From positions 164,850 through 228,849 of IMG/VR virus record IMGVR_UViG_3300034117_001294: a stretch of 64,000 bases of DNA. One strand, 5' to 3'. Positions 1,278 through 46,356 of this stretch are shown one piece after another. The notes beneath the pieces were generated by a model, which did no database searches, had not been told where the DNA came from, and saw only the letters and a list, made by a program, of their open reading frames with translations. Each line of letters starts with the position of its first letter. The stretch's first letter is position 1. The position numbers were made by a program, and so were the translations under genes.

Positions 1278-2122
1278 AGATCCAATTAGCGTCAGATTTA
1301 CATCTAGAGTTTCATGATTTGAATCTCCAAAACCAAAACGGTGCAGATGTACTGGTGCTGTCTGGCGACATTTGCACAGCACAGGATCTTCATGATCATC
1401 CTGCGGCTCAGTTTGATCCGTGGAGCCCCGGAGCATTAGAAGACCTTAAACGTCAAGCAGGTAAAGCACAAAGATTCCGAGACTTCTTCAAGCGTGTTAG
1501 TTTTCAATTCTCTCATGTTATCTACGTGATGGGTAATCACGAACACTATCATGGTAAGTTTGATCGTAGTGCAACCTATTTGAGGGACGAATTCACTAGT
1601 ATGGGTTTGGACAATGTTCATCTGTTAGACAACAACACTAAAGAAATTGACGGAGTTCATTTCATTGGGGGAACCTTGTGGACTGACATGAACAATCATG
1701 ATGCACTTACTTTGTATCATATTGAGAATATGATGAACGACTTCCGAATTATTCGCATTGCTAACGAAAACTTTAAAAAGTTCTTGCCCAAGCGAGCAGT
1801 AGTTGAACATATTAAGACCAAGCAATACCTTCAAACAGTTATACAAGGACTACCTCAAGATGCTAAAGTAGTTGTATGTACACATCATGCACCTACTTTC
1901 CTCAGTATCGGAGAGCAGTACAAAGATGACACATTGATGAACGGTGGTTATGCAAGTAATCTGAGTGAGTTTATATTAGATCATCCTAGAATCAAAGTAT
2001 GGACACACGGCCACATGCATCAGAAGTTTGACTATATGGTAGGGGACACTAGAGTTGTATGCAACCCTAGAGGTTATCCTGGCGAAATAGAATTTGATGA
2101 TAACTTTATTTTTGAGGTGTAA
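1274..2122 (+). CDS. calcineurin-like metallophosphoesterase
   Basis: SDLH, LSGD, GNHEHY, THHAP, HGHMH motifs. Confidence 0.9.
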   Translation: MKIQLASDLHLEFHDLNLQNQNGADVLVLSGDICTAQDLHDHPAAQFDPWSPGALEDLKRQAGKAQRFRDFFKRVSFQFSHVIYVMGNHEHYHGKFDRSATYLRDEFTSMGLDNVHLLDNNTKEIDGVHFIGGTLWTDMNNHDALTLYHIENMMNDFRIIRIANENFKKFLPKRAVVEHIKTKQYLQTVIQGLPQDAKVVVCTHHAPTFLSIGEQYKDDTLMNGGYASNLSEFILDHPRIKVWTHGHMHQKFDYMVGDTRVVCNPRGYPGEIEFDDNFIFEV

Positions 2123-3578: not shown

Positions 3579-4498
3579 GCAAAGAACTCTGGGTAGAAAA
3601 ATACAGACCAAAGACAGTTGACGGCTATGTGTTCAAAGATGCACAGCAACGCAGGCAGGTCAATACATGGATTAAGGACAAGAGTATCCCTCATCTGTTG
3701 CTCAGTGGTACTGCCGGAATCGGCAAGACTACTATGGCTAAATTATTAATTAACGAGTTAGGCATTGAAGAATTTGATGTGTTGGAAATCAACGCCAGTC
3801 GTACTAACTCAGTTGAAGATGTTCGAGACAAAATCACAAACTTTGTTTCAATGATTCCTTTTGGACCTTTTAAAGTTGTACTACTTGATGAAGCAGATTA
3901 TCTTACACCTAATGCACAAGCTGCCCTCCGCGGAGTTATGGAGCAGTTTGCTTCGACCGCTCGTTTCATACTTACTTGCAATTATCCTGCTCGTATTATC
4001 CCTGCTATCCACAGTAGATGTCAAGGATTCCACATCGACAGAGTCGATCAAACCGAGTTCACCGGACGAGTTGCGGTCATCCTGGTAGAAGAGAATATTG
4101 AATTTGAATTAGACGATCTTGATACTTTCGTCAAAGCAACATACCCGGACTTGCGTAAATGTATTAATACCGTACAACAACATGTGCAGGGCGGACAATT
4201 AGTTAAGCCAACGTCAGAAACTTCCACTACATCAGATTGGAAGATTGATATGGTTGATCTCTTTAAAAAGAAAAAGTTTAAAGAAGCAAGAACACTAGTA
4301 TGTAGTAAAGCTAGACCTGAGGAGATTGATGAAATCTTTAGATGGCTATATGATAACCTAGACTTGTTCAGCACTGACGAAGATACTAAGGATGCTGCTA
4401 TCCTTATTATCAAACAAGGACTAGTTGACCACACTATTATTGCAGATCCAGAAATTAATCTGGCAGCAACTATAATTAAATTAGCTAGAATACAATAA
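3575..4498 (+). CDS. clamp loader AAA+ subunit (T4 gp44 / RFC-like)
   Basis: LWVEKYRP, Walker A GTAGIGKTT, EINAS, Walker B LLDEAD, SRC motif. Confidence 0.93.
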   Translation: MSKELWVEKYRPKTVDGYVFKDAQQRRQVNTWIKDKSIPHLLLSGTAGIGKTTMAKLLINELGIEEFDVLEINASRTNSVEDVRDKITNFVSMIPFGPFKVVLLDEADYLTPNAQAALRGVMEQFASTARFILTCNYPARIIPAIHSRCQGFHIDRVDQTEFTGRVAVILVEENIEFELDDLDTFVKATYPDLRKCINTVQQHVQGGQLVKPTSETSTTSDWKIDMVDLFKKKKFKEARTLVCSKARPEEIDEIFRWLYDNLDLFSTDEDTKDAAILIIKQGLVDHTIIADPEINLAATIIKLARIQ

Positions 4499-4502
4499 AA
4501 AA

Positions 4503-4545
4503 ATCAGGTAGTGTGCAGGCCGGATAAACGGTTACACTACCTGAT
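4503..4545. terminator. inverted repeat between convergent clamp loader and phoH genes
   Basis: ATCAGGTAGTGT (4503-4514) / ACACTACCTGAT (4534-4545), perfect 12-bp arms. Confidence 0.55.
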
Positions 4546-4575
4546 CGTACGATTTATGTTTAGCGAATGTGGTGT

Positions 4576-5316
4576 TTATTCGTTATCTGATTCCTTATAG
4601 ATCTTTAATACTTCTCGAACTACAGGGTGACGTTCAACGTCTTTTGTTTCAAACCTTGCCATCGCAATCATACGATACTCACCTCCTTGGGCGTATAAAC
4701 TGCAAAATTCTAGCAAGCCGTTCTCTCTAGGACGGTCCGCTTGATTCAAATCTCCTGTGACTACCATGCGACTGCCGTCGCCTAATCTAGTTAATAACAT
4801 TTTCATCTGTGACGGTGTGGCGTTTTGCATTTCGTCAGCAATGACAAAGGCGTTCTTAAAGGTTCTGCCTCGCATATAAGCTAACGGCGATATTTCAATC
4901 GCTCCATCCTCTAGCATTTCTGCTATTTCTTTTGGATGGTAATACTCTTCAAATACATCGAAAATGGGCCTTGTCCAAGGTGCCATCTTAGCATTCAAAT
5001 CACCCGGTAAAAAACCGTGTTCCTCATCTACGCTAACCGCAGGTCTGGTTACAATGATCTTACTGATTGCACCCTCTTTAAACAACTTAATGGCCATTTG
5101 AACGGCTAGCATAGTTTTACCCGTGCCGGCTGGACCAATAGCAAAAACAATGTATTTTCGAGGATTTTTCAGCAGTTCTAAGTATGTTTCCTGCGAAAGA
5201 TTTCGCGGAACTATATTGACCTGTGTTTTTTTACGCAGATATTGATTCATTTGAATCAGATTTTGACCTTGTTCGGGACGAGCCATTACTCTTTCCTTAC
5301 GTTTTGCTCTAGACAA
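4576..5316 (-). CDS. phoH: PhoH-like ATPase
   Basis: GPAGTGKT, VTRPAV, GFLPG, LAYMRGRT, DEMQN, GDLNQAD, RHP motifs. Confidence 0.93.
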   Translation of the reverse strand: MSRAKRKERVMARPEQGQNLIQMNQYLRKKTQVNIVPRNLSQETYLELLKNPRKYIVFAIGPAGTGKTMLAVQMAIKLFKEGAISKIIVTRPAVSVDEEHGFLPGDLNAKMAPWTRPIFDVFEEYYHPKEIAEMLEDGAIEISPLAYMRGRTFKNAFVIADEMQNATPSQMKMLLTRLGDGSRMVVTGDLNQADRPRENGLLEFCSLYAQGGEYRMIAMARFETKDVERHPVVREVLKIYKESDNE

Positions 5317-5348
5317 ATTATGCCTCCTTTGTGAGCGACCTGCATAGA

Positions 5349-5354
5349 TATTTA
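5349..5354 (-). promoter_or_regulatory. putative T4-like late promoter core TAAATA for phoH
   Basis: TATTTA on plus strand about 33 nt upstream of phoH start. Confidence 0.4.
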
Positions 5355-5399
5355 CTCAAGAGTATAAAAAAGCTAATCAAATAGGGTTCTTTCGAATCG

Positions 5400-5407
5400 T
5401 ATAAATA
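5400..5407 (+). promoter_or_regulatory. T4-type late promoter TATAAATA
   Basis: Exact T4 late consensus, 17 nt before ATG 5425. Confidence 0.65.
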
Positions 5408-5424
5408 TTACAAAGAGAACCCCT

Positions 5425-5985
5425 ATGCACGATATTGTAGATATTATTAAAAACGTACAGACTCTAAGCTCTAACGACACTGCATTTCAAATCCTAAAAG
5501 ATTTTGAACGTGTAATCGACGAGTTAGATATCTATGTGTTTAAAAACTGGGAAGACGGTGAACTTATCGAAGGTCCTACTGTAAACAGGTATTCAGTTAC
5601 CTGCAAGTTTATGTGGCCTCGTGAAGAGATGCCTGATCCTAGTGGCGGCGAAAGATTGTTAGACTATGGTTGCAAAATCACTTATCAGAAAGACAATCTA
5701 CTCGTTCCTAGAAAAGTATATAGTCCAGATGATTTTAGACCTAATACTAAAAAAGGAAAACTAGATGCACATCCTGTTTGGATTGTGACTATCACTATTC
5801 CTAAAAAATTAATGCAGGATATCTTCCAAGGATACGAAGATCGAGAGAATAGTGCGTTGGCAGATTCACTAAAATACGAACAGTTACAGCAGGCAAATCA
5901 ATCAGCTGTTGCTGGAGGTGGAGAAGAAGCCGCAGCAGGCGGCCAAGTTGCAGGAGGAGCACCTAATGAAGCACCAGTTGTTTGA
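5425..5985 (+). CDS. conserved hypothetical phage protein (late gene)
   Basis: 186-aa ORF after late promoter. Confidence 0.8.
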   Translation: MHDIVDIIKNVQTLSSNDTAFQILKDFERVIDELDIYVFKNWEDGELIEGPTVNRYSVTCKFMWPREEMPDPSGGERLLDYGCKITYQKDNLLVPRKVYSPDDFRPNTKKGKLDAHPVWIVTITIPKKLMQDIFQGYEDRENSALADSLKYEQLQQANQSAVAGGGEEAAAGGQVAGGAPNEAPVV

Positions 5986-6712
5986 AGGTCTTAGGAGAGG
6001 TGATCTGCAAGGATTTGTAGATACAACTTTTACTATTGATCAATATACTAGCAAGATGGGGCAAGACTCCGATGTACTAGTCTTAGGATTTAAAGTTAAC
6101 GATAAGCATCCTGCTATCGATTTGATGGAGTTTATTGAAAAGGGCTATCCTTTTGTACTCGATGCTGACATGAGCAGCGGAGAAGAGAGAGATGGCAAAT
6201 ATCAAGTGTTTGTAGAAATACAAAGAACTAAACATTTGCCTGGACAAATTAGAGATTTGTTAAGTGGCGTTGGTCAACTGGTCGACAGTGTTGATTGGAG
6301 ATACCGATACCATAAAGGCGGAAAAAGCAGAGCGTTTAGCGAACAGGCAATCCAAGAAGACATTCCGTTGTCTGAAGAAGATTACAAAAATAAAATGCTA
6401 GAAATTAAAGGAGACGCTATTAAAGAATTCTTTGATAGAACTCCGTTTGATTCTGTAAAAATTGACGAGAATCACAGCGTTACTATTTCTAAGCCATTTT
6501 CAGGATCTGTTAATTTAGAACTATTAGCAATGGGGCCGTATCAAGAAATACAAGACAGCTTACAAGGTGCTATTCAGTTAGACGAAGCTAGCCAAAGTCA
6601 GGTTAATTTTTTAGAAAAATATTTAGGTCCTTACGAAATACATAAAATTAATGATAAATTTTTAGTTCGTAATGGAGATACAGCGTTAGTTTTTAAAAAG
6701 GAACGATGGTAA
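5966..6712 (+). CDS. hypothetical phage protein
   Basis: GGAGG RBS before ATG 5966 (MKHQLFEG...). Confidence 0.8.
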   Translation: MKHQLFEGLRRGDLQGFVDTTFTIDQYTSKMGQDSDVLVLGFKVNDKHPAIDLMEFIEKGYPFVLDADMSSGEERDGKYQVFVEIQRTKHLPGQIRDLLSGVGQLVDSVDWRYRYHKGGKSRAFSEQAIQEDIPLSEEDYKNKMLEIKGDAIKEFFDRTPFDSVKIDENHSVTISKPFSGSVNLELLAMGPYQEIQDSLQGAIQLDEASQSQVNFLEKYLGPYEIHKINDKFLVRNGDTALVFKKERW

Positions 6713-6761
6713 TGGATCAAGAAGAATGCCCTAAATGCGGCGGAAAACATAAGAGGTAATA

Positions 6762-7391
6762 ATGAGCTTTACATTTGATTTTAAAAAAGAACATCTAGAA
6801 GAAATGATTCACGGCAATCCGTATGTGGATCAATGGTATGATGCATTATATGCAATTTTGCCAGAATACCAGATCAACACACCAGAACGTGTAGCAGCAT
6901 TTGTTGCTCAATGTGCTCACGAAAGTGGCGGCTTTAGAGCACTTAAAGAAAACTTAAACTACCGTGCAGTGACATTAAGGAAAGTATTTCCTAAATATTT
7001 CACAAGTGATGAAATGGCCGCACAATACGCTAACAAGCAAGAAGCAATTGCTAACAGAGTTTATGCGAATCGTATGGGCAACGGTAGCGAAGCAAGCGGA
7101 GACGGATTCCGTTATTGTGGTCGTGGATTAATTCAGTTAACTGGTAAAGAAAACTATTCTTGGTTTGCTGCTAGTTTAGAAATGTCTGTCGAAGAGGTTC
7201 CTGAATACTTGGCAACATTTGAAGGTGCTGTACAATCAGCGTGTTGGTTCTGGGAAAGCACTGGATTGAATAAAGAAGCAGATGCTGGCGATATTAAAAC
7301 AATGACCAAAAAAATCAACGGCGGTTTTATTGGTTTAGAAGATCGTATTAAGCATTACAATCACGCATTGCATGTTCTAGGAGCACACTAA
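6762..7391 (+). CDS. glycoside hydrolase family 19 (chitinase-like) endolysin
   Basis: AAFVAQCAHESGGF, ENLNY, IANRVYANRMGNG, GRGLIQLTGKENY, INGG..GLEDR. Confidence 0.92.
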   Translation: MSFTFDFKKEHLEEMIHGNPYVDQWYDALYAILPEYQINTPERVAAFVAQCAHESGGFRALKENLNYRAVTLRKVFPKYFTSDEMAAQYANKQEAIANRVYANRMGNGSEASGDGFRYCGRGLIQLTGKENYSWFAASLEMSVEEVPEYLATFEGAVQSACWFWESTGLNKEADAGDIKTMTKKINGGFIGLEDRIKHYNHALHVLGAH

Positions 7392-9512: not shown

Positions 9513-10346
9513 ATGGACCATTACAAAACTTTAGGCATTTCAAAAGAAGCAACACAAGACGAAATTAAAAAAGCGTTTCGTAGTCTAGCTTCAAAACATC
9601 ACCCAGATAAGGGAGGTGATACTGCCTCTTTTCAAAAAATTCAAGAAGCATATGCTACACTGGGAGATCCAGAAAAACGAGCAGCATATGATAATCCCAG
9701 TCCGTTTGGACAAGATCCATTTGGAGGATGGCAACAGGCAAATACCGGCGGAGTTCCGCAAGGATTTGAACAATTCTTTCATCACTTTGGTCCAGACCTG
9801 GGTGCAGTGTTTGGCAGAAGGCCTCAGCGTAATAAAAATATAAATCTTGAAACAGTTATTAGTCTAGAAGAAGCATTTGCTGGTAAAGAAATTATTGCAA
9901 GCTATCGTTTAATAAATCATCAAGAAAGAACGTTTGAAGTTAAAATTCCTGCTGGTATTAATGATGGAATAGTACTAAGGATTGCAGGTGCAGGAGATAA
10001 TTCATTTGCAGGTATGCCTCCCGGTGATGCTATGCTGTCAGTAAGAATTCGCCCTCACTCAAGATTTCAGAGAAATGGAAATGATCTTGTTGAACAGATT
10101 AATATCACTGCCTGGGATGCAATGTTAGGCAAAGACCTTGAAGTAATTACAGTTGGAGGAGATAAACTAACTGTTCAAATAAAAGAAGGCACTCAACCAG
10201 ATTCGTTCCTACGAATACAAGGCTACGGAATGCCAGTAATGAATAATCCCGGTATTAAAGGCAATCATATGATACTGATTAAAGTATCAATTCCTAATAA
10301 CCTTACAGAGTATCAAAAGAATACACTGAGATCAATTGCATCTTAA
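9513..10346 (+). CDS. dnaJ: DnaJ/CbpA-type co-chaperone (J domain plus C-terminal domain, no Zn finger)
   Basis: HYKTLG, HPD motif (KHHPDKGG), G/F-rich linker, VKIPAG, GDAM, G.GMP. Confidence 0.9.
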   Translation: MDHYKTLGISKEATQDEIKKAFRSLASKHHPDKGGDTASFQKIQEAYATLGDPEKRAAYDNPSPFGQDPFGGWQQANTGGVPQGFEQFFHHFGPDLGAVFGRRPQRNKNINLETVISLEEAFAGKEIIASYRLINHQERTFEVKIPAGINDGIVLRIAGAGDNSFAGMPPGDAMLSVRIRPHSRFQRNGNDLVEQINITAWDAMLGKDLEVITVGGDKLTVQIKEGTQPDSFLRIQGYGMPVMNNPGIKGNHMILIKVSIPNNLTEYQKNTLRSIAS

Positions 10347-10354
10347 ATATTACT

Positions 10355-10855
10355 ATGTTGACAATTATAAAAAATCCAGACCCAATATTGGCTGAAAGAA
10401 TGCCAGAATTTGATTTTGAAAATCCACTAACCGATCCTGTTCAACTTGAAAAAGACATGATTGAAGCTATGCTTGCCAATGGCGGCATTGGATTATCTGC
10501 TAATCAAATAGGTGTTAGAACTCGTATGTTTGTTATGGGACATCAGAAATATCGAGATCATGCACAGGCATTTTTCAATCCAATCATTGCGAGAGTAACA
10601 GACGACTTGCTCGAAGAAGAGGAAGGATGCTTGAGTTTTCCCAACATTTATGCTAAAATAAAAAGACCAAGAGGAATTCTTGTTAGGTTTCAAAACTCAA
10701 AAGGTGAGACCCAAGAAGCTGAATTTTTTGGTTACGAGTGTCGATGCTTTTTACATGAATTTGATCATCTAGAAGGAATCACATTTCAAAATAGAACAAG
10801 TGCTCTCAAGTGGGCGTTGGCAGTAAAGAAATCAATCAAAAGGAAATACAAATAA
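10355..10855 (+). CDS. def: peptide deformylase
   Basis: GIGLSANQ, EGCLS, HEFDHLEG motifs. Confidence 0.93.
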   Translation: MLTIIKNPDPILAERMPEFDFENPLTDPVQLEKDMIEAMLANGGIGLSANQIGVRTRMFVMGHQKYRDHAQAFFNPIIARVTDDLLEEEEGCLSFPNIYAKIKRPRGILVRFQNSKGETQEAEFFGYECRCFLHEFDHLEGITFQNRTSALKWALAVKKSIKRKYK

Positions 10856-13125
10856 TGCTGGAACCAAATAACGATCTCGAAGGAATGTTTGAACGTGCGA
10901 TCGAAGTTGCCGCTAAACATAAACATGAGTATATCACGCTGGAACATTTTTTGTACAGTATGATAACTGATGAAAACTTCAAAGGGATGCTAAAAGATTT
11001 TGGTGCCGAAGTTGAGTTGTTAAAGAAGAGTCTCGAAAAGTTTATTCGAGATGATCTTAACGATATTAAAACTGACAAAGAAAATTATCGTCCAAAGAAA
11101 ACAAACACTGTAGAGCGTATGTTGAATCGTGCTTTTACACAAGTGTTGTTTAGCGGCCGTACAGTAATTGAACCAATTGACTGCTTTATTAGTATTTTTA
11201 GTGAAAAGAAGAGCTTTGCTAACTTCTTTCTACGCAAGGCTAAAATTGATAAAGACAAGTTTATTGAATTTCTACATAACAGTGCGTTAAACGAAGACGG
11301 TGAGGCTAGCGAAGTAGGTAGCAATCAACTAGAAAAAATGATTGTTCAATACTGTGCAAACTTAACTAATAGGGTCAAGCAGAAAAAGATTGATCCTGTT
11401 ATCGGTCGTGAGAAAGAAATTGAAGAAATTCAACTTGCACTAGCACGCCGTCAAAAATCAAATGTTATGTTGATCGGCGACCCAGGTGTAGGTAAAACTG
11501 CTATTGCAGAGGGCCTTGCTCGCAAGATTGAAGAAGGCAAGGTTCCTAAGTTTATTCAAGGTCATACTGTTTACAGTCTAGATATCAGTGCATTACTAGC
11601 AGGCAGTAAGTATCGTGGCGACTTTGAAGAACGCTTAAAGATGGTTATTACTGCACTTGAAAAGAAAAAGAACTGTATCTTGTTCATCGACGAAGCACAT
11701 ATGATGAACGGTGCTGGATCAGCAAGTGGCGGATCTAATGACATGGCAAATATGTTGAAACCAGCATTAGGTAAAGGTACTATCAAAGTTGTGGCATCGA
11801 CTACATGGGAAGAATTCCGTAAGCACTTTGAAAAGGATCGTGCCCTGATGCGTCGATTCCAACGTGTTGTAGTTAACGAGCCAGATGAAGCTACTGCTAT
11901 TAAAATCCTTAAAGGTCTTAAGAAGTACTATGAACAGCATCACGGTGTTAAGATCACTAATCAGGCAGTTATTGACAGCGTAAAATATTCTATCAAGTAT
12001 ATGACTGATAAGAAGCTGCCAGATAAAGCAATTGACCTAATTGACTGTGCATGTGCTAGATTCAAAGTCAGAGACGAAGAAGCAGGCATTGTTGATCACG
12101 ATGAAATTTTATTTGAAGTGTCAAAGTTAACTGGCTTACCTTTAGATCAAATTGCACAAAAAGAAAACAAGAATCTTAAAGACCTTGACAAGAACATGCG
12201 TAACAAAGTGTTTGGTCAGGAAACTGCAATTGAAATATTGTTAGATAAAATCTTTATTGCACAAGCAGGTTTAAAGAGCTTAAACAAACCAGTAGGTAGT
12301 TTCCTATTTACAGGACCAACCGGTGTAGGTAAGACTGAAACTGCAAAAGTATTGGCTGCAAGTATGGGAGTAGAACTAGTTCGCTTTGATATGAGTGAAT
12401 TCCAAGAGAAACACTCAATTGCTAAGTTTATTGGTGCTCCCCCCGGCTATATTGGATTTGAAGACAATGCAGGTATGTTGATTACCAAACTGCAAGAGCA
12501 TCCAACTGCTATTTTACTGTTTGATGAAATTGAGAAAGCTCATCCTGATGTTGCTAACTTACTACTACAAATGATGGACAATGGTTATGTTACTGGATCT
12601 AATGGTAAGAAGGCTGATGGTCGAAATGCCATTCTTATCCTTACTAGTAATTTAGGTGCTGCCGATAACGATCGTAATGCAGTTGGATTTAGTAGTTTAG
12701 AAAGAGGTGACGAAACTGATGGTGCAATTAACAGTTTCTTTAAACCAGAATTCCGCAATCGATTAGACGGTATTATCAAGTTTGGTAAACTAGATCACAA
12801 TACCATGGCTAAGATTGTCAAGAAGTTTATTGACGAACTAAACAGTTTGTTGAAAGATAAGAATGTTGCTGTTAAGTTAACTGCTGACGCTGCCGAATTG
12901 TTAATCAAGAAAGGATTTAATCGTAAGATGGGTGCTCGTCCACTACAACGTACAATTGATGATATGATTAAGAAGCCGCTGAGTAAGGAAATTTTATTTG
13001 GTCGGTTAGTAAACGGTGGAGTTGTTGAAGTAGGTGCTAACAGTAATGATCTTACCTTAACTTATCCTGAAATTTTACCCGTAGTAGAAAATGTTGAAAT
13101 TGATAAAGCGACAGAAAGTCGATAA
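10855..13125 (+). CDS. clpA: ClpA-like Hsp100 AAA+ chaperone
   Basis: Clp N domain (EYITLEH), two Walker A motifs (GDPGVGKT, GPTGVGKT), KYRGDFEER, GAPPGYIG, FKPEFRNRLD, GARPL; no ClpB middle domain. Confidence 0.92.
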   Translation: MLEPNNDLEGMFERAIEVAAKHKHEYITLEHFLYSMITDENFKGMLKDFGAEVELLKKSLEKFIRDDLNDIKTDKENYRPKKTNTVERMLNRAFTQVLFSGRTVIEPIDCFISIFSEKKSFANFFLRKAKIDKDKFIEFLHNSALNEDGEASEVGSNQLEKMIVQYCANLTNRVKQKKIDPVIGREKEIEEIQLALARRQKSNVMLIGDPGVGKTAIAEGLARKIEEGKVPKFIQGHTVYSLDISALLAGSKYRGDFEERLKMVITALEKKKNCILFIDEAHMMNGAGSASGGSNDMANMLKPALGKGTIKVVASTTWEEFRKHFEKDRALMRRFQRVVVNEPDEATAIKILKGLKKYYEQHHGVKITNQAVIDSVKYSIKYMTDKKLPDKAIDLIDCACARFKVRDEEAGIVDHDEILFEVSKLTGLPLDQIAQKENKNLKDLDKNMRNKVFGQETAIEILLDKIFIAQAGLKSLNKPVGSFLFTGPTGVGKTETAKVLAASMGVELVRFDMSEFQEKHSIAKFIGAPPGYIGFEDNAGMLITKLQEHPTAILLFDEIEKAHPDVANLLLQMMDNGYVTGSNGKKADGRNAILILTSNLGAADNDRNAVGFSSLERGDETDGAINSFFKPEFRNRLDGIIKFGKLDHNTMAKIVKKFIDELNSLLKDKNVAVKLTADAAELLIKKGFNRKMGARPLQRTIDDMIKKPLSKEILFGRLVNGGVVEVGANSNDLTLTYPEILPVVENVEIDKATESR

Positions 13126-14692: not shown

Positions 14693-17600
14693 ATGAATTT
14701 AAATGAGCTGTTTAGTAACAAAAAGAAAGTTGTGTCAGAAGGTGGAAATTTATCGCTACCTGGCGGGCACGATGCACAGCAAATCGATCTTAAAGTGCAT
14801 AATCGTTCCTACATTGTACCAATTTTAGATACACTGTTGATTAATATCAACAGTTCTTTTGCAAAAAAATACAAAAAACCTTTGTGGAATCCGCAACTAC
14901 TACAGAGTAAACAATTTCTAAGTGGAAGTAGTCTACACTTCTTTAATACCAAAGGTATTACTGACCAACAATTTGTAGAAAAGAAACCAAAAGTAGGCGA
15001 CATTGACACACAGGTCAACAAAGAAAACGAACAAGAATTAGAACAATGGTTATCTGCTAGTCAAGGTAAGATGGTAGGCAATGCCAAGTTCTTAGGTTTC
15101 CAAAGAGGCAACGAACAATTCTCCAGTTTATGGGAGCTACAAGACCCACCTATTAAAGTGCAAATTGACTTAGAATTTGTAGAGTTTGACAAAGACGAAC
15201 CCACTCCATGGAGCAAATTTAGTCATAGCAGCAGCTGGGATGATCTAAACGCAGGAGTTAAGGGTGTATTCCACAAGTTTTTAATTCAAAGTCTAGCATC
15301 ATTAAGTAGAAAAGATTTCTTACTACGCAAAGCTGTAGGACGAGGCAAGGCCAAAGAAATACAAGATGTTCCTACAACTGATAACATGGTCAGCTTTGCA
15401 GTATCCAGTAAAGAAGGCGGCGGCCTACGTGCCAAATACGAACCAGTATTAGATGCAAACGGACAGCCTTTAATTAGTAACGGTATGCCAGTTATGCAGG
15501 CATTACCAGCAACTGGTTACGAACAAGACATTGGAAAGATTTTTGGATCTATCTTTGGTTCGAGATTAAATCCTAAACAAGCTGCACAATTAGAAAGCAA
15601 GTACTGGAGCTTTACTGGTTTAGTTGATGCAATGAATACGCTAGTAACTCCAGAAGAAAAGCAGTCAGTGTTGTCTGCATTTATTGACAAAATATTTGGC
15701 AAGGGTGCCCAAGGTCTTTACAAAGGCGATCCAGAGCGTGATAGTGCAGAAAAATCTGCTGCATTGGATTTAATGATCAATAAATTAGGAGTTCAGACAC
15801 CTAGTGATCTTGAACAGATGAAGCAGCAATACAAGGCATCGTACAGAGTTACTGCTGAAAGTTTGCAAGAAGCAGAAGTTAAAGCACAGTTCCGTAAGAA
15901 CATGCCACACCTACGTGATCTAAAGCCTATTGACTTTTTAGATCTATTGGACGAGATTCACGATGGTAATGGTAATTTTAAATTACAAAACATTCCGTTA
16001 AATGTTAAGATTGACGGATTTGGCGGACGTTTTGGTAAGGATGCAGAAGGCAAGCCTTTTATGGCTACCAGCAATACTCCTCCAAGATATAAAGCAGGAT
16101 TTGTACAATATCATCAAGACAAGGGCACAACTGATCCTGAAATTTTAGGTCGTGCAGAAAAGTTTGATGAACTGTTTAATGAAATGATGAACGCTATCAA
16201 ATTGGTTGATAGCAAGCTAGGTGCAGACTTTCTTGTTAATAAACAGGTCACCTGTGAAGTATTGTTCTTGCCGTTTGCAGCCGAAACGTCAGAGGGCAAA
16301 TTAAAATTTGTAGGAATTCAATACGATAAGTTTCCTCCAGGTGTAGAATTAGTTCTTGTGCCGTTCCGTGTAGTAGATGCTAGTTCCGGAGAAGATGTAC
16401 CTGATGCTAACGATGTTGTTACAAGTCTAAGCAAATTAGGCGGACAAGGAAGTGTTAGATTCCTTAGTAATAGTCTAGTACAAAAAGACGGACTTGATGT
16501 TACTGAGATTATTAATCCTTTAGATAATATCGAAGAACTAAAACAAATTGTATCTGACACAGCAGGCAAAAGAGATCGTGCCAGTTTGCAACTAAGACGC
16601 GAAGTAGAAGAAAAATTAATGCCTGTTAAGATTGCACTGGAAAAGGCAATTGATGCAGATCCTAACATTATTGGCAAAGATATATTAGGTCAAGACTACG
16701 AAGGTATTGTTATCAACAGTCGTCTTGGCCCTATCAAAGTTACTAGCCAACAACAAAAAGATATTATTACCCAAAAGAACGCTGCCAAAGCTGCCGCTCG
16801 TGCAGAACAGCCGCGTGGTGAAAACAAAACTGCGGTAGTTGCTATCGGTAGCTTTGTGGGACACAAAGGTCATCAACAGCTATTTGGTCTTACAATTAAT
16901 AAGGCAAAAGAAGTCAGCGGCGATCCTTATCTGTTTATGGGCAGTGCAGTAGGTGCAGACGATCCTATTCCAGTTGCTGACAAAATTAAAACTTGGAAAC
17001 AATTGTATCCCGAGTATGCAGGCAATATCAGTGCTGTAACACAAGAGGGCGGATCTTTGATGCAAAAGATCAAGCACGAGTTAATCAACCCGTTGCCAGG
17101 CAAGCCACCACGCTACGATAATGTTATTATTATGGTAGGTGAAGATCAGGCCAAGATGCCTATCGCACAGGCCCTAATGAAGGCAGTTAATAAGTTTCCT
17201 GGATACGAGCATGTTAAGGTACAATTAGAAGTTACTCCTAGAGGAACTGGCATGAGCTTTACTAAGCTACGTAACGTGTTAAAAACTGGAGATGAGCAAC
17301 AAGCATTCCAAATGTGGAATGATGCATTCAATGGCGGCCAGGATGGAGCAAAACCATTACCGTCACAATGGATTAAACATTTAATGGATGTGTCAAAGAC
17401 CGGAATGAGCACACCTCAACCAAAGCCAGCAGTTAAGAAGCCTGCTGTACTACCTACTCCGCAGACTGTTCAACAACCTGCACTAGGTGAAATGAGATTG
17501 TTTAATGCACTAATGAGTCCTAAAAAAATTGTAAATGAAAAGACTATTGAAGAACGTAAACGTAAAAAAAGTAAAGGTGCAGCATGGGGTCCAGGGCCAT

Positions 17601-19501
17601 ATGGTTGGTACGGATTTGATGCAGGTTATAGTGGTAACGGTGGAGATGGTGGTAGTGATGGTGGTGAGAGCATGAATCAAGAAAACTTTGCTGATAGTCG
17701 TAATCCACAAGACAACAGCAACAGTAAACGGCAAATGTTAAAAATTGCATCATTAAACAATATTAAAGATGTGAACAAAATTAATGCAGGGCAGATGTTA
17801 AAATTGCCTAACGGCACAACTTATAAAGTAATGCCTGGAGATACCCTGTCTACAATTGCGGCAAGACAAGTGAAAGATCAATCTTCTCCAATGCCCCAAC
17901 CCTCAGTTAAACAAGGTCCAAACTCTAACATAGATCAAACGACAAGAGATAAAGCACAGGCATTTGTTGGTCAACAAAAACCAGAAATGGGTGGTGGCAG
18001 GGGGGTCGTTAATCCAGCAACCGTCCGGCCCGACGAACCAACCCAAACCGGAGTTCGAAGTGGTCCTAACACAAACATAGATCAACCAGCAAGAGATAGG
18101 GCCAAAGCGGCTGTTACTAAAATTTCTAGTGAAGACGATATCATGAATATGGTTAAAGATCATGAAGGTGTAAAAAATAAACCATACCAAGATACAAAAG
18201 GATTATGGACTGTAGGAGTAGGTCACTTAATTGGTGATGGCAAGACTCTCCCTTCAGAGTGGAAAAGAACATTTTCAGACGCAGAAATAATGAATCTGTT
18301 TAAAAAGGATTATCAGCATCATAAACAGGCAGCAGAAAAAATTCCTGGATTTAGTAATTTAAACATGAACGGACAGGCTGCTCTAATTGATCTAACATTT
18401 AACATGGGTCCAAGATGGTGGAAGGCTTGGCCTAATTTTACAAAAGCCATGCAAGCAGGAAACATAGATCAAGCAGCAAATGCATTAAAAAATAGTGCAT
18501 GGTATTCACAAGTTGGTAGAAGAGCACCTAAAATTGTATCTCTTTTACAGAGCGGAGATCGATCTGTAGCAGAAAACTTTGCGGATGGACGTAATCCACA
18601 AGACAAGGGCGACAGTAAACGTCACGGCGTTCCTACAAAATCGTCAGTGAGCAATCTACGTAAAGTAGCTAAACAAGGCGGCCGTAAAGGACAATTAGCA
18701 CATTGGATGGCAAATATGAAAGCAGGTAAAGCAAAAGCTAAGAATGAAGACTTCAACGGCGAATACGACGACGAAGCAGGAATGGCACAGAGTAATCTAC
18801 GCACAATGGCTCGTGCAGTTGATGGTTTATTAAAAACTATTAAGAGCAACGATAACTTGCCAGAATGGGGACAAGAAAAGATTGCCAAAGCAGAAATGAT
18901 GTTGGTCAGTGTCTGGGATTATTTGTTAAGCCAAAAAGAAATGGGCATGGATCCTAAGATCAACGAAAGCAAGGCTGTAGAAAGTTTAAGACAGATTGTC
19001 GCAGAGTTGTCCAATGAAAAATTAGGACAATATAAAAAGGCCGCCGGTGATCAAGCAACTGCCGCAGACAAAGCGGGCGACTATGCTAAGGGTCATAAAC
19101 GTTTCAAAGGAATTGTTAAAGCAACTAACAAGCAGTTTGATAATGATGCTAAAAAGCATAGAGAGCAAGGTATGGCGGAGGCTGGCAGCAATGCTATAGA
19201 TACTGTATCTAAACGCTTAACTGATCCTAAAGATGGAATGACAGCCAAACTTAGAGCAGCTGGTGATAAGAAACGCGATAGTCAGTACATGGGCACACAG
19301 ATTGCTAAGAATGATCGAACCAGTAAAGACGAATGGGGCAACTTAAAAGAAAAGATTAAAGGTGCAGACGGCAAAGCCTGTTGGAAAGGTTATAAGTACG
19401 CAGGTACTAAGAACGGTAAAGACAAGTGTGTGCCAATTGGCGAAGCCTACGAACTTGAAATGACCCTGGCTATTCTAAAGCTGTTTGAAAGTAATAAATG
19501 A
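14693..19501 (+). CDS. 1602-aa multidomain polyprotein: Pol-beta-like nucleotidyltransferase, ligase-like domain, HIGH nucleotidyltransferase, LysM-like, GH24 lysozyme, charged modules
   Basis: SGSS..GDID; KIDG..CEV..EGIVI..IKV; GHKGH..VGED..MSFTKLR; YKVMPGDTLSTIA; HEG..PYQDTKGLWTVGVGH..LIDLTFNMG..SAWYSQVGRRA. Confidence 0.8.
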   Translation: MNLNELFSNKKKVVSEGGNLSLPGGHDAQQIDLKVHNRSYIVPILDTLLININSSFAKKYKKPLWNPQLLQSKQFLSGSSLHFFNTKGITDQQFVEKKPKVGDIDTQVNKENEQELEQWLSASQGKMVGNAKFLGFQRGNEQFSSLWELQDPPIKVQIDLEFVEFDKDEPTPWSKFSHSSSWDDLNAGVKGVFHKFLIQSLASLSRKDFLLRKAVGRGKAKEIQDVPTTDNMVSFAVSSKEGGGLRAKYEPVLDANGQPLISNGMPVMQALPATGYEQDIGKIFGSIFGSRLNPKQAAQLESKYWSFTGLVDAMNTLVTPEEKQSVLSAFIDKIFGKGAQGLYKGDPERDSAEKSAALDLMINKLGVQTPSDLEQMKQQYKASYRVTAESLQEAEVKAQFRKNMPHLRDLKPIDFLDLLDEIHDGNGNFKLQNIPLNVKIDGFGGRFGKDAEGKPFMATSNTPPRYKAGFVQYHQDKGTTDPEILGRAEKFDELFNEMMNAIKLVDSKLGADFLVNKQVTCEVLFLPFAAETSEGKLKFVGIQYDKFPPGVELVLVPFRVVDASSGEDVPDANDVVTSLSKLGGQGSVRFLSNSLVQKDGLDVTEIINPLDNIEELKQIVSDTAGKRDRASLQLRREVEEKLMPVKIALEKAIDADPNIIGKDILGQDYEGIVINSRLGPIKVTSQQQKDIITQKNAAKAAARAEQPRGENKTAVVAIGSFVGHKGHQQLFGLTINKAKEVSGDPYLFMGSAVGADDPIPVADKIKTWKQLYPEYAGNISAVTQEGGSLMQKIKHELINPLPGKPPRYDNVIIMVGEDQAKMPIAQALMKAVNKFPGYEHVKVQLEVTPRGTGMSFTKLRNVLKTGDEQQAFQMWNDAFNGGQDGAKPLPSQWIKHLMDVSKTGMSTPQPKPAVKKPAVLPTPQTVQQPALGEMRLFNALMSPKKIVNEKTIEERKRKKSKGAAWGPGPYGWYGFDAGYSGNGGDGGSDGGESMNQENFADSRNPQDNSNSKRQMLKIASLNNIKDVNKINAGQMLKLPNGTTYKVMPGDTLSTIAARQVKDQSSPMPQPSVKQGPNSNIDQTTRDKAQAFVGQQKPEMGGGRGVVNPATVRPDEPTQTGVRSGPNTNIDQPARDRAKAAVTKISSEDDIMNMVKDHEGVKNKPYQDTKGLWTVGVGHLIGDGKTLPSEWKRTFSDAEIMNLFKKDYQHHKQAAEKIPGFSNLNMNGQAALIDLTFNMGPRWWKAWPNFTKAMQAGNIDQAANALKNSAWYSQVGRRAPKIVSLLQSGDRSVAENFADGRNPQDKGDSKRHGVPTKSSVSNLRKVAKQGGRKGQLAHWMANMKAGKAKAKNEDFNGEYDDEAGMAQSNLRTMARAVDGLLKTIKSNDNLPEWGQEKIAKAEMMLVSVWDYLLSQKEMGMDPKINESKAVESLRQIVAELSNEKLGQYKKAAGDQATAADKAGDYAKGHKRFKGIVKATNKQFDNDAKKHREQGMAEAGSNAIDTVSKRLTDPKDGMTAKLRAAGDKKRDSQYMGTQIAKNDRTSKDEWGNLKEKIKGADGKACWKGYKYAGTKNGKDKCVPIGEAYELEMTLAILKLFESNK
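17681..18621 (+). repeat. about 50-bp imperfect direct repeat (17681-17730, 18572-18621) flanking the LysM-lysozyme module
   Basis: GAAAACTTTGCTGATAGTCGTAATCCACAAGACAACAGCAACAGTAAACG vs GAAAACTTTGCGGATGGACGTAATCCACAAGACAAGGGCGACAGTAAACG. Confidence 0.85.
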
Positions 19502-21745: not shown

Positions 21746-22381
21746 ATGAGTTTCTTAGTTGCAAACTTACCTCCGGTGCATTGTTTTGTACGCAAAGAAT
21801 TTTTGTATGATTTTAAGTCAGGACAGGGCGAATACGAACCGTGCATATGGGTGTCAATCAAAAGCCTGCGTAGTCAAGCATTCCGTATAGAAAGCTATTT
21901 GCCCAGATACGGAGCACTGTACGACAAACTACCTTTACATGCCTATGTAAGCAGAAACACCGATTTAGAGCCAGACAAGTTTGTACCACTCGATACACTG
22001 CAAATATGGGACTGCTTCAGCTATGATATTGCTGTAATACAAAAGGCGTTCTTACGTAATCTTTCCTGCGAGTTCTATGCCAAGGATCGTCAGCTACACA
22101 AAGGCGACTATATGTTTACCGTAGACAATGCTAGTCCAGATCTCAATGTTATAGACACTAGCTACTCAGAGTGGCCCGAAGATCACAAAAGTTTTAACTT
22201 TATACAACTAGATAATGGACAATATGCCGCACAGCCCAATAATCGTTGCAGATTCTTTGATGCAGCCAGTAACCCTAAAGAAATGTTATTTCCAGATTTT
22301 AAAGTTGCTACAAAAAAATGGGTTGTAGAAACAAACCCCAAATGGCGATTGGGCGACTCCGATACAGTAACTTACGAATAA
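21746..22381 (+). CDS. conserved hypothetical phage protein
   Basis: 211-aa ORF; LQIWDCFSY, EDHKS, GQYAAQPNNR. Confidence 0.8.
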   Translation: MSFLVANLPPVHCFVRKEFLYDFKSGQGEYEPCIWVSIKSLRSQAFRIESYLPRYGALYDKLPLHAYVSRNTDLEPDKFVPLDTLQIWDCFSYDIAVIQKAFLRNLSCEFYAKDRQLHKGDYMFTVDNASPDLNVIDTSYSEWPEDHKSFNFIQLDNGQYAAQPNNRCRFFDAASNPKEMLFPDFKVATKKWVVETNPKWRLGDSDTVTYE

Positions 22382-23064: not shown

Positions 23065-25734
23065 ATGAGCTACGTCGATTCAATGTGGGATCGCGACAAG
23101 GACGTTATTCGCGTCGTTGAGCGTGATCCCAAAAAAGGCAGAATCTTTCAAGATTATCCTGCCAAATATGTATTATACTACCCAGACTCTAAAGGAAAAT
23201 ATCGTTCAATTTACGGTGATCCTCTTAGCAAAGTTTCTGTCAAAAATTACAAAGAGTTCCAAAAAGAAACCCGAATTCATTCAGGAAAGAAACTCTTTGA
23301 AAATGATATTAATCCTGTATTCCGATGCCTAGAAGAAAACTATTTAGGCAAAGATGCTCCTAAGCTCAATGTAGCATTTTGGGACATTGAAGTAGACTTT
23401 GATCCAGAACGTGGTTACAGTACTCCTGAAGATGCGTTCATGCCAATTACTGCGATTTCTGTCCACCTACAATGGTTAGATACATTAGTATGTCTTGCAG
23501 TCCCCCCAAAGACACTGACAATGGAGCAAGCAGTAGAGCAGGTAAAAGACTTTCCTAACACAATGCTGTTTGAAACAGAATACGAAATGTTGGAAACATT
23601 CCTGGGCTTGATTCAAGATGCAGATATTTTAAGCGGATGGAACAGTGAAGGATACGATATGCCTTATACTGTCAACCGCATCATTAAAGTTCTTAGCAAA
23701 GAAGATACCCGTAGGTTATGTCTATGGGACCAGTTCCCCAAGAAACGGGAGTACGAGAAGTATGGAAAAAAGGCTATTACTTATGATCTTGTTGGTCGTG
23801 TTCATTTGGACAGTCTCGAGTTGTACCGCAAGTACACCTATGAAGAGCGACATACATACCGATTGGATGCAATTGGAGAGATGGAGGTAGGTGAAACTAA
23901 GACGCAGTACGAAGGTACCCTAGATCAATTGTACAACAATGACTTCCGCAAGTTTATTGAATACAACAGGCAAGATACTGCATTGCTGAATAAACTAGAT
24001 AATAAATTAAAATTTATTGACCTAGCAAATACACTAGCACATGAATGTACTGTGTTGTTACAGACCACAATGGGTGCTGTGGCTGTAACTGAGCAGGCCA
24101 TTGTAAATGAAGCTCATCATCGAGGACTAATTGTTCCGGGTCGTCCTAAACGTGATGATGATTTAGAAACACAAGCCGCTGGTGCGTATGTTGCATATCC
24201 TAAGAAAGGATTGCATGACTGGATTGGATCAATGGACATTAACTCATTGTATCCGTCAGCTATTCGTGCATTAAACATGGGACCAGAAACTATTGTTGGG
24301 CAGTTACGTCAATCTTATACCAAAGCTGAAATTGAAGGTAAGATAGCAAAGGGTTCTAGCTTTGCAGCCTCTTGGGAAGGCAAGTTCGGCAGTAACGAAT
24401 ACGAACTTGTCATGGCAAAAGATCGTGTAACTGATATCACAGTTGATTGGGAAGATGGCAGAGTTGATGTGCTAAGTGGGGCTCAAATTTATGAACTGAT
24501 TTTTGAAAGTAATCAGCCGTGGGTTATCTCAGCAAACGGTACTATCTTTACCTATGAGAAAGAAGGGATCATTCCTGGATTGTTGAAACGTTGGTATGCC
24601 GAACGTAAAGAAATGCAGGCAAAATTAAAAGAATGTATTGCATCGGGGAATAAAGTTGAAGAAGAATATTGGGATAAAAGACAGCTGGTTAAAAAGATTA
24701 ACCTTAATAGCTTATACGGTGCTATTCTTAACGCTGGTTGTAGGTTCTTTGATAATCGTATTGGGCAATCCACAACTCTTACTGGTAGACGGATCGCCAG
24801 GCATATGGCTTCGAAAGTAAATGAAGTTATTACTGGAGACTATAACTACACCGGCAAGAGTGTGATATACGGTGATACTGACTCTGTATATTTTAGTGCA
24901 TACACTACTTTAAAAAATGATATCAATAAAGGGGTAATTCCCTGGAACAAAGAAGTTGTCGTTCAACTATACGATACTATCTCTGAAGAAGTAAATGGAA
25001 CATTTCCACAATTTATGTTGGACGATTTTCATTGCCCAAAAACTCGAGGAGATGTTATTAAGGCCGGTCGAGAATTTGTTGCTATCAAAGGCATCTTTAT
25101 GACCAAGAAGCGATACGCTATCTTGTACTTTGACAAGGAAGGTAAGAGGCAAGATATAGATGGCAAGCCAGGTAAAATCAAAGCCATGGGCTTAGATTTG
25201 AAACGTAGTGATACTCCTGAATTTATGCAAAACTTTTTAAGCGAGATTTTAACCAAAGTTCTTAACAATGCTCAAGAAGAAGAAATTCTAGAACGTATCG
25301 GTGAGTTCCGAAGTGAATTCAAACAGAGGCCTGGGTGGGAGAAGGGTAGTCCTAAACGTGCAAATAACATTGCAGAGTATCAGGCCAAAGAAGTCAAAGC
25401 GGGTAGAACCAACATGCCCGGACATGTTCGTGCTAGTATTAATTGGAATACTCTTAAACGTATGAACGGTGACAAATACTCGATGGGTATTGTAGACGGC
25501 ATGAAAGTTATTGTGTGCAAGATGAAAGACAATCCATTAGGATACACTTCAATTGCATATCCAGTTGACGAAATGCGTTTACCGAAATGGTTCCAAGAAC
25601 TTCCGTTTGATCATGGGGAGATGGAGGCAACCATTATTAACAATAAGCTAGAAAACCTTATTGGAGTACTAGAGTGGGATTTAGAATCCACTACACAAAA
25701 TAATACATTCGGCAGTTTATTCAGCTTTGAATAA
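23065..25734 (+). CDS. B-family DNA polymerase (T4 gp43-like)
   Basis: ExoI DIE, ExoII GWNSEGYD, ExoIII YNRQD, motif A DINSLYPS, motif B KINLNSLYG, motif C YGDTDS, KKRY. Confidence 0.96.
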   Translation: MSYVDSMWDRDKDVIRVVERDPKKGRIFQDYPAKYVLYYPDSKGKYRSIYGDPLSKVSVKNYKEFQKETRIHSGKKLFENDINPVFRCLEENYLGKDAPKLNVAFWDIEVDFDPERGYSTPEDAFMPITAISVHLQWLDTLVCLAVPPKTLTMEQAVEQVKDFPNTMLFETEYEMLETFLGLIQDADILSGWNSEGYDMPYTVNRIIKVLSKEDTRRLCLWDQFPKKREYEKYGKKAITYDLVGRVHLDSLELYRKYTYEERHTYRLDAIGEMEVGETKTQYEGTLDQLYNNDFRKFIEYNRQDTALLNKLDNKLKFIDLANTLAHECTVLLQTTMGAVAVTEQAIVNEAHHRGLIVPGRPKRDDDLETQAAGAYVAYPKKGLHDWIGSMDINSLYPSAIRALNMGPETIVGQLRQSYTKAEIEGKIAKGSSFAASWEGKFGSNEYELVMAKDRVTDITVDWEDGRVDVLSGAQIYELIFESNQPWVISANGTIFTYEKEGIIPGLLKRWYAERKEMQAKLKECIASGNKVEEEYWDKRQLVKKINLNSLYGAILNAGCRFFDNRIGQSTTLTGRRIARHMASKVNEVITGDYNYTGKSVIYGDTDSVYFSAYTTLKNDINKGVIPWNKEVVVQLYDTISEEVNGTFPQFMLDDFHCPKTRGDVIKAGREFVAIKGIFMTKKRYAILYFDKEGKRQDIDGKPGKIKAMGLDLKRSDTPEFMQNFLSEILTKVLNNAQEEEILERIGEFRSEFKQRPGWEKGSPKRANNIAEYQAKEVKAGRTNMPGHVRASINWNTLKRMNGDKYSMGIVDGMKVIVCKMKDNPLGYTSIAYPVDEMRLPKWFQELPFDHGEMEATIINNKLENLIGVLEWDLESTTQNNTFGSLFSFE

Positions 25735-41086: not shown

Positions 41087-41109
41087 AAAGCCCCGGAAGG
41101 GGCTTTTTT
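41085..41109. terminator. bidirectional Rho-independent terminator at the strand switch
   Basis: AAAAAGCCCC-GGAA-GGGGCTTTTTT between convergent stop codons. Confidence 0.9.
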
Positions 41110-42487: not shown

Positions 42488-42490
42488 TCA

Positions 42491-44113: not shown

Positions 44114-44127
44114 CTAGTTGCTCTCCG

Positions 44128-46350: not shown

Positions 46351-46356
46351 AACTTA

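Follow-up and report, generated by a model that had tools for sequence, protein, structure and literature searches.

The gene analysed here comes closest to three described kinds of system: capsid-targeted cargo, transferase-plus-ligase repair pairs and HxGH adenylyltransferases. In phage T4 about 10 N-terminal residues suffice for capsid targeting, and positions 8 and 10 of the leader (P3 and the P1 glutamate) govern cleavage by the gp21 protease (PMC9026906); T4-like phages place diverse cargo behind such leaders (PMC9026906, PMC3012670). In the repair pairs, which are common in jumbo phages, RlaP first restores 1-2 nucleotides to the 3′ ends of damaged RNA, which is then sealed (PMC12776372, PMC7824862). 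The gene encodes a 1602-residue protein and lies in a 64-kb stretch of DNA (the window, to which positions refer unless stated otherwise) that is the terminal part of the 228.8-kb IMG/VR record IMGVR_UViG_3300034117_001294, a record rated 65% complete. As judged from sequence and structure models, the protein carries three nucleotidyltransferases of three unrelated folds with their active-site residues intact: a Pol-beta-type domain (D1), a ligase-type domain (D2) and an HxGH adenylyltransferase domain (D3), together called the trio. As the nearest relatives of the family B DNA polymerase encoded in the window (23065-25734) are those of Sinorhizobium phage Phosso, Agrobacterium phage Atu_ph07 and the GAP32-like coliphages (42-51% identity), the source is taken to be a T4-related jumbo myovirus.

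Like the T4 internal proteins IPI-III and Alt, the trio protein has a short leader ending in hydrophobic-x-Glu that is removed (here putatively) at the mature N terminus. As in T4, the phage has a gp21-type protease and a gp23-type capsid protein and variable cargo stands behind a conserved leader; Alt is likewise an enzyme delivered with the DNA. Unlike the T4 internal proteins, the cargo is of ~180 kDa, holds three nucleotidyltransferases and has putative internal cleavage sites. The trio protein has no sequence similarity to any T4 internal protein, and in this family packaging has been demonstrated only for a single-domain homologue in the Campylobacter phage IBB_35. The pairs of RlaP (PF10127) and RNA ligase found in bacteria and jumbo phages resemble the trio in that a Pol-beta-fold enzyme is genetically linked to a ligase-fold enzyme. 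They differ in that D1 lacks a match to PF10127 and D2 lacks one to PF09414 or PF09511, D1 and D2 are fused and joined by a third, HxGH enzyme, a healing enzyme of the Pnkp type is missing, and the set is probably delivered by the virion. In African swine fever virus (ASFV) a polymerase and a ligase form a known viral repair pair that is comparable to D1 plus D2.

Literature searches for such a system gave nothing specific, and we found no description of the conserved trio, of a ~180 kDa fusion behind a leader of the capsid-targeting type, or of the unnamed families D1 and D2. An initial annotation of the window had described positions 14740-17410 as three different nucleotidyl-transfer folds fused in one putative injected polyprotein. 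The three folds do lie within that stretch, but it covers only the N-terminal 57% of the 1602-residue open reading frame (ORF); D3 is followed by a Pro/Gln linker, a LysM sequence, a GH24 lysozyme and a conserved C-terminal module (Table 1).

Predicted nucleotidyltransferase domains of the fusion protein

Domain borders were set from the natural architectures of relatives, at about residues 17, 393-397, 705 and 905-915, and the coordinate blocks of the initial annotation (residues 17-389, 393-706 and 710-906) agree with these limits. All of the motif strings it had quoted are present at the places given. As the key residues are invariant in divergent relatives, the motif matches go beyond chance. 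Structure prediction (D1 by itself, D2 together with D3) and Foldseek searches bore out the fold assignments, the AlphaFold2 models matching only the three expected superfamilies: Pol-beta for D1, ligase for D2 and HxGH adenylyltransferase for D3.

In D1 the strings are SGSS (residues 77-80), GDID (102-105) and QIDLE (157-161). The catalytic residues G78-S79, D103xD105 and D159 are invariant in an alignment of 84 sequences that are 30-60% identical to the query, as are D184, K190, D350 and K354. The AlphaFold2 model of D1 (mean pLDDT 95.9, pTM 0.92) places G78-S79 at the start of helix 62-67 of the model, D103xD105 on its strand 87-93 and D159 on its strand 139-147; the spacing from GS to DxD, ~24 residues, exceeds the usual 9-13. 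When the VIA structural aligner was used to scan 48,161 PDB representatives, nearly all of the top 50 matches to D1 were nucleotidyltransferases of the Pol-beta superfamily. TUT7 was the best (Z 8.1), and GLD-2, Trf4, OAS, cGAS-like receptors, CD-NTases and MenT were among the others. Pol beta, lambda, mu and TdT matched with Z ~7 over 175-180 residues. Foldseek searches of PDB, AFDB and BFVD were concordant (the probability for Pol beta was 0.97), and an AFDB cluster annotated 'Polymerase nucleotidyl transferase domain' matched D1 at E 1e-5. On the family X polymerases (Pol beta, lambda, mu and ASFV Pol X) D1 superposes with its palm and thumb over 162-182 residues (Z ~7, 8-16% identity), whereas it has neither the helix-hairpin-helix nor the lyase domains of that family.

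Pfam and NCBIfam models, including NTP_transf_2, RlaP PF10127 and PolyA_pol PF01743, gave nothing against D1 at E <= 10, and sequence and profile searches against PDB sequences gave nothing meaningful. Its PHROG, phrog_19290, is labelled function unknown. Given that curated family models give no match, we regard D1 as a separate, unnamed family. The assignments of D1 to RlaP and to the class II CCA-adding enzymes were both rejected, owing to the missing PF10127 and PF01743 matches. CCA addition, one of the activities that the initial annotation had listed for assay, thus found no support, and D1 is unlikely to be a CCA-adding enzyme since in Vibrio phage Va1 a separate tRNA nucleotidyltransferase adjoins the D1 homologue.

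The motif strings of D2 are NVKIDG (residues 437-442), CEVLF (521-525), YEGIVI (669-674) and PIKV (680-683). Among 36 sequences, K439xD441-G442 of motif I, E522 of motif III, E670-G671 of motif IV and K682 of motif V are invariant. Motif V has a single lysine in place of KxK, and all of the motifs lie on the expected strands in the AlphaFold2 model of D2-D3 (mean pLDDT 92.2). The best structural matches are nick-sealing RNA ligases of the Rnl5 (Naegleria NgrRnl, Deinococcus DraRnl) and Rnl2 (T4 Rnl2, trypanosome REL1) types, with Z 8.7-10.8: NgrRnl 5cot gave 10.8, TbREL1 9.8 and T4 Rnl2 8.7. The minimal DNA ligase Pmar-Lig gave 8.8. Further matches are Rnl3, Trl1 and T4 Rnl1 (Z ~8 for the last two), and over the RNA and DNA ligases as a whole Z was 8-10.8 with a Foldseek probability of 1.00. 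D2 shares with the Rnl5 and Rnl2 ligases the canonical placement of motifs I, III, IV and V. It differs from them in sequence (identity ~11-14%), in its one motif V lysine, in a long helical insert and in lacking their N-terminal OB-like domain and C-terminal domain. In the model the nucleotidyltransferase domain with its helical insert runs straight into D3, with no OB domain. The initial annotation had spoken of ligase/capping motifs. The ligase part stands, by motifs and by fold, whereas a capping enzyme was rejected as there was none among the top 50 fold matches. Pfam (PF09414, PF09511 and PF01068) and NCBIfam gave nothing against D2 at E <= 10, searches of PDB sequences by sequence and profile again gave nothing meaningful, and its PHROG is labelled 'unknown function'. 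A Trl1-like architecture for D2 plus D3 was also rejected. A Foldseek search of Swiss-Prot ranked Trl1 first, but the TM-score was 0.18 and the alignment places D3 on the kinase domain of Trl1.

D3 contains GHKGH (residues 723-727), MVGED (814-818) and MSFTKLR (854-860), and H724, G726, H727, T857 and R860 are invariant in 25 sequences. In the model H724-K-G-H727 is at the start of the helix that follows strand 1, and S855-F-T857-x-x-R860 is at the start of the C-terminal helix. D3 thus has the Rossmann-like fold, the HxGH motif and the S-x-T-x-x-R motif of NadM-type NMNAT, NadD, PPAT and the FMNAT module of RibF, with VIA Z scores of 11.9 for NadM 2qjt, 11.8 for NadD, 11.5 for archaeal NMNAT 1f9a, 11.4 for PPAT and 10.7 for RibF. 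Unlike these enzymes it falls below Pfam thresholds, and it is ~40 residues longer than enzymes of 160-170 residues. The only Pfam match was FAD_syn (E 0.004, 17.5 bits, under the cut-off of 27), CTP_transf_like gave no match, and a D3 profile found in PDB sequences a weak RibF match (E 9e-4) restricted to the HxGH segment. Foldseek put FMNAT and PPAT first (RibF E 7e-6). As VIA favours NMNAT and NaMNAT while Foldseek favours FMNAT and PPAT, the modelled fold alone does not tell NMNAT, PPAT and FMNAT identities apart or single out the acceptor of D3.

The trio recurs widely. A word-indexed search found more than 765 relatives of the query protein, and when 1.84 billion cluster representatives were searched exhaustively with HMMER, at least 893 clusters at 50% identity matched. 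In the best 120 relatives identity is 63-95% over the first ~905 residues, and beyond that point the sequences are completely divergent. Sorted by domain content, 152 of the 268 retrieved relatives are D1-D2-D3, 67 are D1 alone, 8 are D1-D2 and 13 are D2-D3, the rest being D3 alone (13), D2 alone (2) and fragments (13). Hence the three domains are fused in more than 150 metagenomic jumbo-phage proteins. A metagenomic relative with the same DnaJ-Def-ClpB locus has adjacent genes for D1 (394 residues) and D2-D3 (514 residues), the split falling exactly on the D1/D2 border. In Xanthomonas phage BUDD adjacent genes encode D1, an unrelated 333-residue protein X, D2 and a 162-residue CTP_transf_like protein (hhalign probabilities of 100% for D1 and 99.5% for D2), and Stenotrophomonas phage Ps15 has the same gene order. 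The small adenylyltransferase of Ps15 is by sequence nearest to NadM (E 9e-5) and archaeal NMNAT (E 5e-4). An hhalign comparison of D3 with the small adenylyltransferases of the BUDD and Ps15 cassettes was collinear and not significant (E 0.018). All of the homologues in cultured phages are annotated hypothetical. That the enzymes are fused in one lineage and linked in operons in others argues for a shared pathway, and the three are, on this comparative evidence, a conserved functional unit across phages, whether fused or encoded by adjacent genes.

The X genes lying between the D1 and D2 homologues (BUDD 5849-6850, Ps15 4722-5666) bear no relation to each other and lack any match in Pfam; in both a D...(D/E)xK-like pattern is seen, by eye only. 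The possibility that X of BUDD is a D1 paralogue was rejected (hhalign E 0.19). Upstream of the D1 homologue, BUDD (1-550), Ps15 (1-506) and the Campylobacter phages CP220 (3999-4958) and IBB_35 (512-1483) each have a QueE-like/radical-SAM gene, which in the latter two directly adjoins the homologue. This proximity may be chance or may be a link to 7-deazaguanine DNA modification.

The leader, the glutamate sites and probable packaging

The N-terminal leader looks like a T4 capsid-targeting sequence. Its E16 is kept in 119 of 121 close relatives, and 185 of the 186 relatives with a leader of at least six residues have a glutamate that abuts the invariant GGN, with a hydrophobic residue at the second position ahead of that glutamate. 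The Glu-containing linkers to which the initial annotation had drawn attention (VVSE, residues 13-16; SLQE, 390-393; ALGE, 930-933) proved to be conserved hydrophobic-x-Glu sites at the domain borders. Position 393 is E in 110 and D in 11 of the 121 relatives, and E933 is kept in 96 of them; P3 is hydrophobic at both sites.

A search of the 228.8-kb record for the head-gene families PF03420 and PF07068 gave no match. This is owing to the incompleteness of the record, as the head module is on an overlapping identical contig. That 122-kb IMG/VR contig is 100% identical over 7.5 kb around the trio gene, extends further, and carries a Peptidase_S77 PF03420 gene (the gp21-type protease, E 3e-26) next to a PF07068 gp23-type capsid gene (E 3e-95). 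In Campylobacter phage vB_CcoM-IBB_35, which has a gp21 homologue, the gene 1-56 product was found in purified virions by tandem mass spectrometry with electrospray ionization (ESI-MS/MS), at 17% coverage (PMC3322345). We found that gene 1-56 encodes a D1 homologue of 44,446 Da, the N terminus of which reads MKLSELMFILE directly followed by GGN.

Given the T4-type leader, the glutamate sites, the gp21-type protease in the same phage, the virion homologue of IBB_35 and the predicted peptidoglycan modules of the tail, we consider that the protein is probably packaged and processed. The earlier view of an injected polyprotein thus has indirect support from the leader, the protease, the gp23-type capsid, the IBB_35 homologue and the tail, whereas cleavage and ejection are putative.

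The variable tail and the gene neighbourhood

Coordinates of the features of the ORF are collected in Table 1. The lysozyme region of the tail also matches phrog_7 and phrog_2083 ('internal virion lysozyme motif'). As read from the sequence, the LysM is apparently circularly permuted, its C-terminal half (residues 1013-1039) preceding its N-terminal half (residues 1043-1058). The 54-nucleotide repeat that flanks the LysM-lysozyme cassette encodes ENFAD[S/G]RNPQD..SKR and would fit an insertion of the cassette by recombination; a second repeat, of 74 nucleotides and 70% identity, is found at 17895 and 18042. Peptidoglycan domains (lysozyme, VanY, LysM or PG_binding) are present in ~9 of 105 tails. 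The extreme C terminus (~19340-19498, residues 1550-1602) contains two cysteines in C-W-K-G-Y...G-T-K...C-V-P-V-S-E-D. This C-W-K-G-Y region gave no family match, and most relatives keep it irrespective of what the variable middle of their tail holds.

Table 1 Features of the trio gene (window coordinates)
Feature	Positions	Residues	Strand	Description
Whole ORF P0001	14693..19501	1602 aa	+	Leader, D1, D2, D3, linker, LysM, lysozyme, conserved C-terminal module
N-terminal leader MNLNELFSNKKKVVSE	14693..14740	16 aa	+	Ends V-x-E16 directly before the predicted mature GGN
D1	14741..15871	17-393	+	Pol-beta superfamily nucleotidyltransferase (alignment, AlphaFold2 model, fold matches)
L391-Q-E393	15863..15871		+	Putative processing site at the D1/D2 border
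D2	15872..16807	394-705	+	Ligase-type covalent nucleotidyltransferase domain (alignment, model, fold matches)
D3	16808..17422	706-910	+	Predicted HxGH (HIGH-type) adenylyltransferase; NMNAT, NaMNAT, PPAT, FMNAT class
Pro/Gln-rich linker ending L-G-E933	17423..17491		+	Putative third processing site
LysM-lysozyme cassette	17680..18624		+	Flanked by a 54-nt direct repeat, 17680-17733 / 18571-18624, 87% identity
LysM sequence	17729..17866	1013-1058	+	Pfam LysM 28.9-34.5 bits, cut-off 20.9, two stretches
GH24 phage lysozyme	18155..18529	1155-1279	+	PF00959 E 1e-15, 58.5 bits, cut-off 22.3
C-terminal module	18968..19498		+	Common to most relatives; consensus of 105 tails; phrog_26930

The neighbours of the gene are DnaJ-like, peptide deformylase, ClpB-like and DNA polymerase genes. 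Within 9513-13125 lie a 277-residue ORF, the counterpart of which in the syntenic relative carries DnaJ domains, the peptide deformylase gene that it precedes (10355-10855, +) and a gene for a ClpA/B-type ATPase with two AAA+ domains (10810-13125, +). The order DnaJ, Def, ClpB, two small ORFs and transferase gene is also kept in the contig of that relative. Just upstream of the DNA polymerase gene a 211-residue ORF (21746-22381, +) matches phrog_3704 ('ferredoxin', auxiliary metabolic gene) with E 2e-86. On the minus strand four tail-fibre-like genes (41108-51405) are found, and directly downstream of them is a giant ORF of more than 4170 residues (51407-64000) that runs past the end of the window. 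Outside the window, at record positions 86566-126505, there are 39 tRNA genes; the majority form a single 16-kb array that covers nearly all amino acids. Also outside the window, at record positions 48378-49400 and 51100-51855, lies an NAD+ salvage pair ~2 kb apart, made up of a 340-residue NMNAT (CTP_transf_like) plus Nudix protein and a 483-residue protein of the NampT/NAPRTase family (NampT E 6e-58). Two more small cytidylyltransferase-like ORFs of 152 and 173 residues (window 819-1277, +, and record ~59.5-60.0 kb) bring the genome to four HxGH-type transferases. A Megablast search with the trio gene against 50,697 phage records gave zero matches.

A proposed role and its alternatives

We tentatively propose that the ORF encodes a head-packaged multi-enzyme precursor, the trio of which carries out add-and-seal end repair at entry, a reading that we hold to be a realistic possibility somewhat short of probable. 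The 16-residue leader would take the precursor into the prohead core in the manner of a T4 capsid-targeting sequence, where the gp21-type protease of the phage would cut after Glu16, Glu393 and Glu933. The products would be a D1 enzyme of ~43 kDa, a D2-D3 enzyme of ~60 kDa and a C-terminal fragment of variable content, which in this protein is LysM plus GH24 lysozyme, and all of these would exit the head together with the DNA. Less firmly, D1 may add one or a few nucleotides to damaged 3′-OH ends and D2 may seal 3′-OH/5′-phosphate breaks via a lysyl-AMP intermediate, a division of labour like that of RlaP and RNA ligase in RNA (tRNA) repair. Repair would thereby be ready before any phage gene expression, against host nucleases that fire on infection. 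D3 might make an adenylylated cofactor of dinucleotide type from ATP, the nearest guess being NAD+ or NaAD, and may feed or back up D1 and D2. As the record carries 39 tRNA genes and gave no match when searched for the Rnl1, Rnl2, RlaP and CCA-enzyme families, D1 and D2 could, by analogy, be the version of the RlaP-plus-ligase function used in this lineage.

Several points weigh against this proposal. Classic tRNA repair needs an end-healing kinase or phosphatase, and none is fused or adjacent to the trio. D1 is not an RlaP member by hidden Markov model, and the role given to D3 in any repair scheme is ad hoc. DNA is, as far as the models go, as open a substrate as RNA, because D1 superposes at greatest length on family X DNA polymerases, and minimal DNA ligases as well are matched by D2. 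Five other conserved hydrophobic-x-Glu triplets sit inside folded domains, hence this pattern taken alone is weak evidence for processing. The trio gene sits amid chaperone and replication genes, outside the head module. Thirty relatives, about one in ten, begin M-GGN and have no leader, hence virion delivery would not be universal in the family, and as some of these also have no tail, the enzymes would also work without delivery. The last observations are those expected if the protein is not packaged and is instead an early cytoplasmic multi-enzyme for RNA/tRNA upkeep that serves the 39 tRNAs, with a tail that acts in lysis and with an N-terminal peptide and glutamate sites that have no capsid-targeting role. 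Leader-less and tail-less versions do occur in syntenic loci, the neighbouring genes are not head genes, and peptidoglycan domains are found in only the small fraction of tails given above. Nevertheless, nearly all relatives with a leader have the hydrophobic-x-Glu junction precisely where the mature GGN begins, a D1 homologue is in the virions of IBB_35 and a T4-type protease is encoded by the same phage, and we consider a non-packaged protein distinctly unlikely.

In a further alternative the delivered enzymes would act on the incoming genome, D1 as a family-X-like gap-filler or terminal transferase and D2 as a DNA ligase that seals nicks, so that nicks and gaps are mended, and ends joined or blunted, before host exonucleases or restriction act. 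The longest alignments of D1 are indeed those with Pol beta, lambda, mu, TdT and ASFV Pol X (Z 6.5-7.3), and the Foldseek probability given above for Pol beta points the same way, as do Atlas neighbours with DNA_pol_B_palm and thumb domains. Minimal DNA ligases (Pmar-Lig, LigD and the ASFV ligase) are among the matches to D2, the BUDD and Ps15 cassettes adjoin primase-helicase and UvsX genes, and packaging makes sense only for an activity required ahead of gene expression. The top-ranking matches of D2 are, however, the RNA ligases NgrRnl and TbREL1, the D1 model has neither the helix-hairpin-helix fingers nor the 8-kDa domain of family X polymerases, an OB domain is missing from D2, and D3 would have no obvious role; repair of DNA ends is thus unlikely, though it should be kept in view. 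A different use of delivered enzymes would be host take-over, by AMPylation or NMPylation of host proteins or small molecules or by making or destroying signalling nucleotides. Protein and small-molecule nucleotidyltransferases, CD-NTases, OAS and the MenT/AbiEii toxins belong to the Pol-beta-fold enzymes and all are among the D1 matches, and there is precedent for host-modifying enzymes as packaged cargo (PMC3012670). The analogy would be with T4 Alt, an enzyme that modifies proteins of the host when it enters the cell. The tight cross-lineage linkage of D1 with a ligase-type enzyme points instead to polynucleotide ends, and none of these subfamilies stood out as a closer match (Z 5-7), which leaves take-over improbable.

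The initial annotation had given D3 the task of an NMN adenylyltransferase that rebuilds NAD+ at infection against SIR2/TIR NADase defences. NMNAT and NaMNAT enzymes are the best VIA matches of D3 (Z 11.5-11.9), and by sequence NadM and archaeal NMNAT come closest to the unfused cassette partner in Ps15. This version is nevertheless weakened by the canonical NampT and NMNAT-Nudix genes already in the genome and by a D3 fold that is not separable from PPAT and FMNAT, which score nearly as high by VIA and higher by Foldseek. Moreover, D3 misses the Pfam CTP_transf_like model, NMNAT alone cannot regenerate NAD+ from NADase products, and a few dozen injected molecules would be a poor remedy for late bulk depletion of NAD+. 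We give NAD+ resynthesis only a slim chance. A still more speculative and very improbable scheme has the trio capping polynucleotide ends rather than repairing them: D2 would leave an A-pp-N 5′ end, D1 would tail the 3′ end and D3 would build an NAD-like cap, taking a 5′-ATP-terminated or adenylylated end as its 'ATP'. If this were true, phage DNA or first transcripts would be invisible to host exonucleases or sensors, and in D3 one would have the enzyme of post-transcriptional NAD-type capping for which the field has searched in vain (PMC8131947).

Returning to the proposal of a packaged repair precursor, the trio can be approached in cultured phages amenable to genetics, namely Ps15, BUDD, X1 and phages of the CP220 and IBB_35 types. 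The domains are compact, highly conserved candidate tools with predicted activities: a new terminal transferase, a minimal OB-less ligase and a new HxGH adenylyltransferase. For the phages themselves, the trio is a set of enzymes conserved among T4-related and jumbo phages, a large family to which no database gives a name. If packaging is true, the T4-like capsid-targeting route would deliver, beyond inhibitors and an ADP-ribosyltransferase, nucleic-acid-end enzymology, and would give a broader view of what a phage brings into the cell before gene expression.

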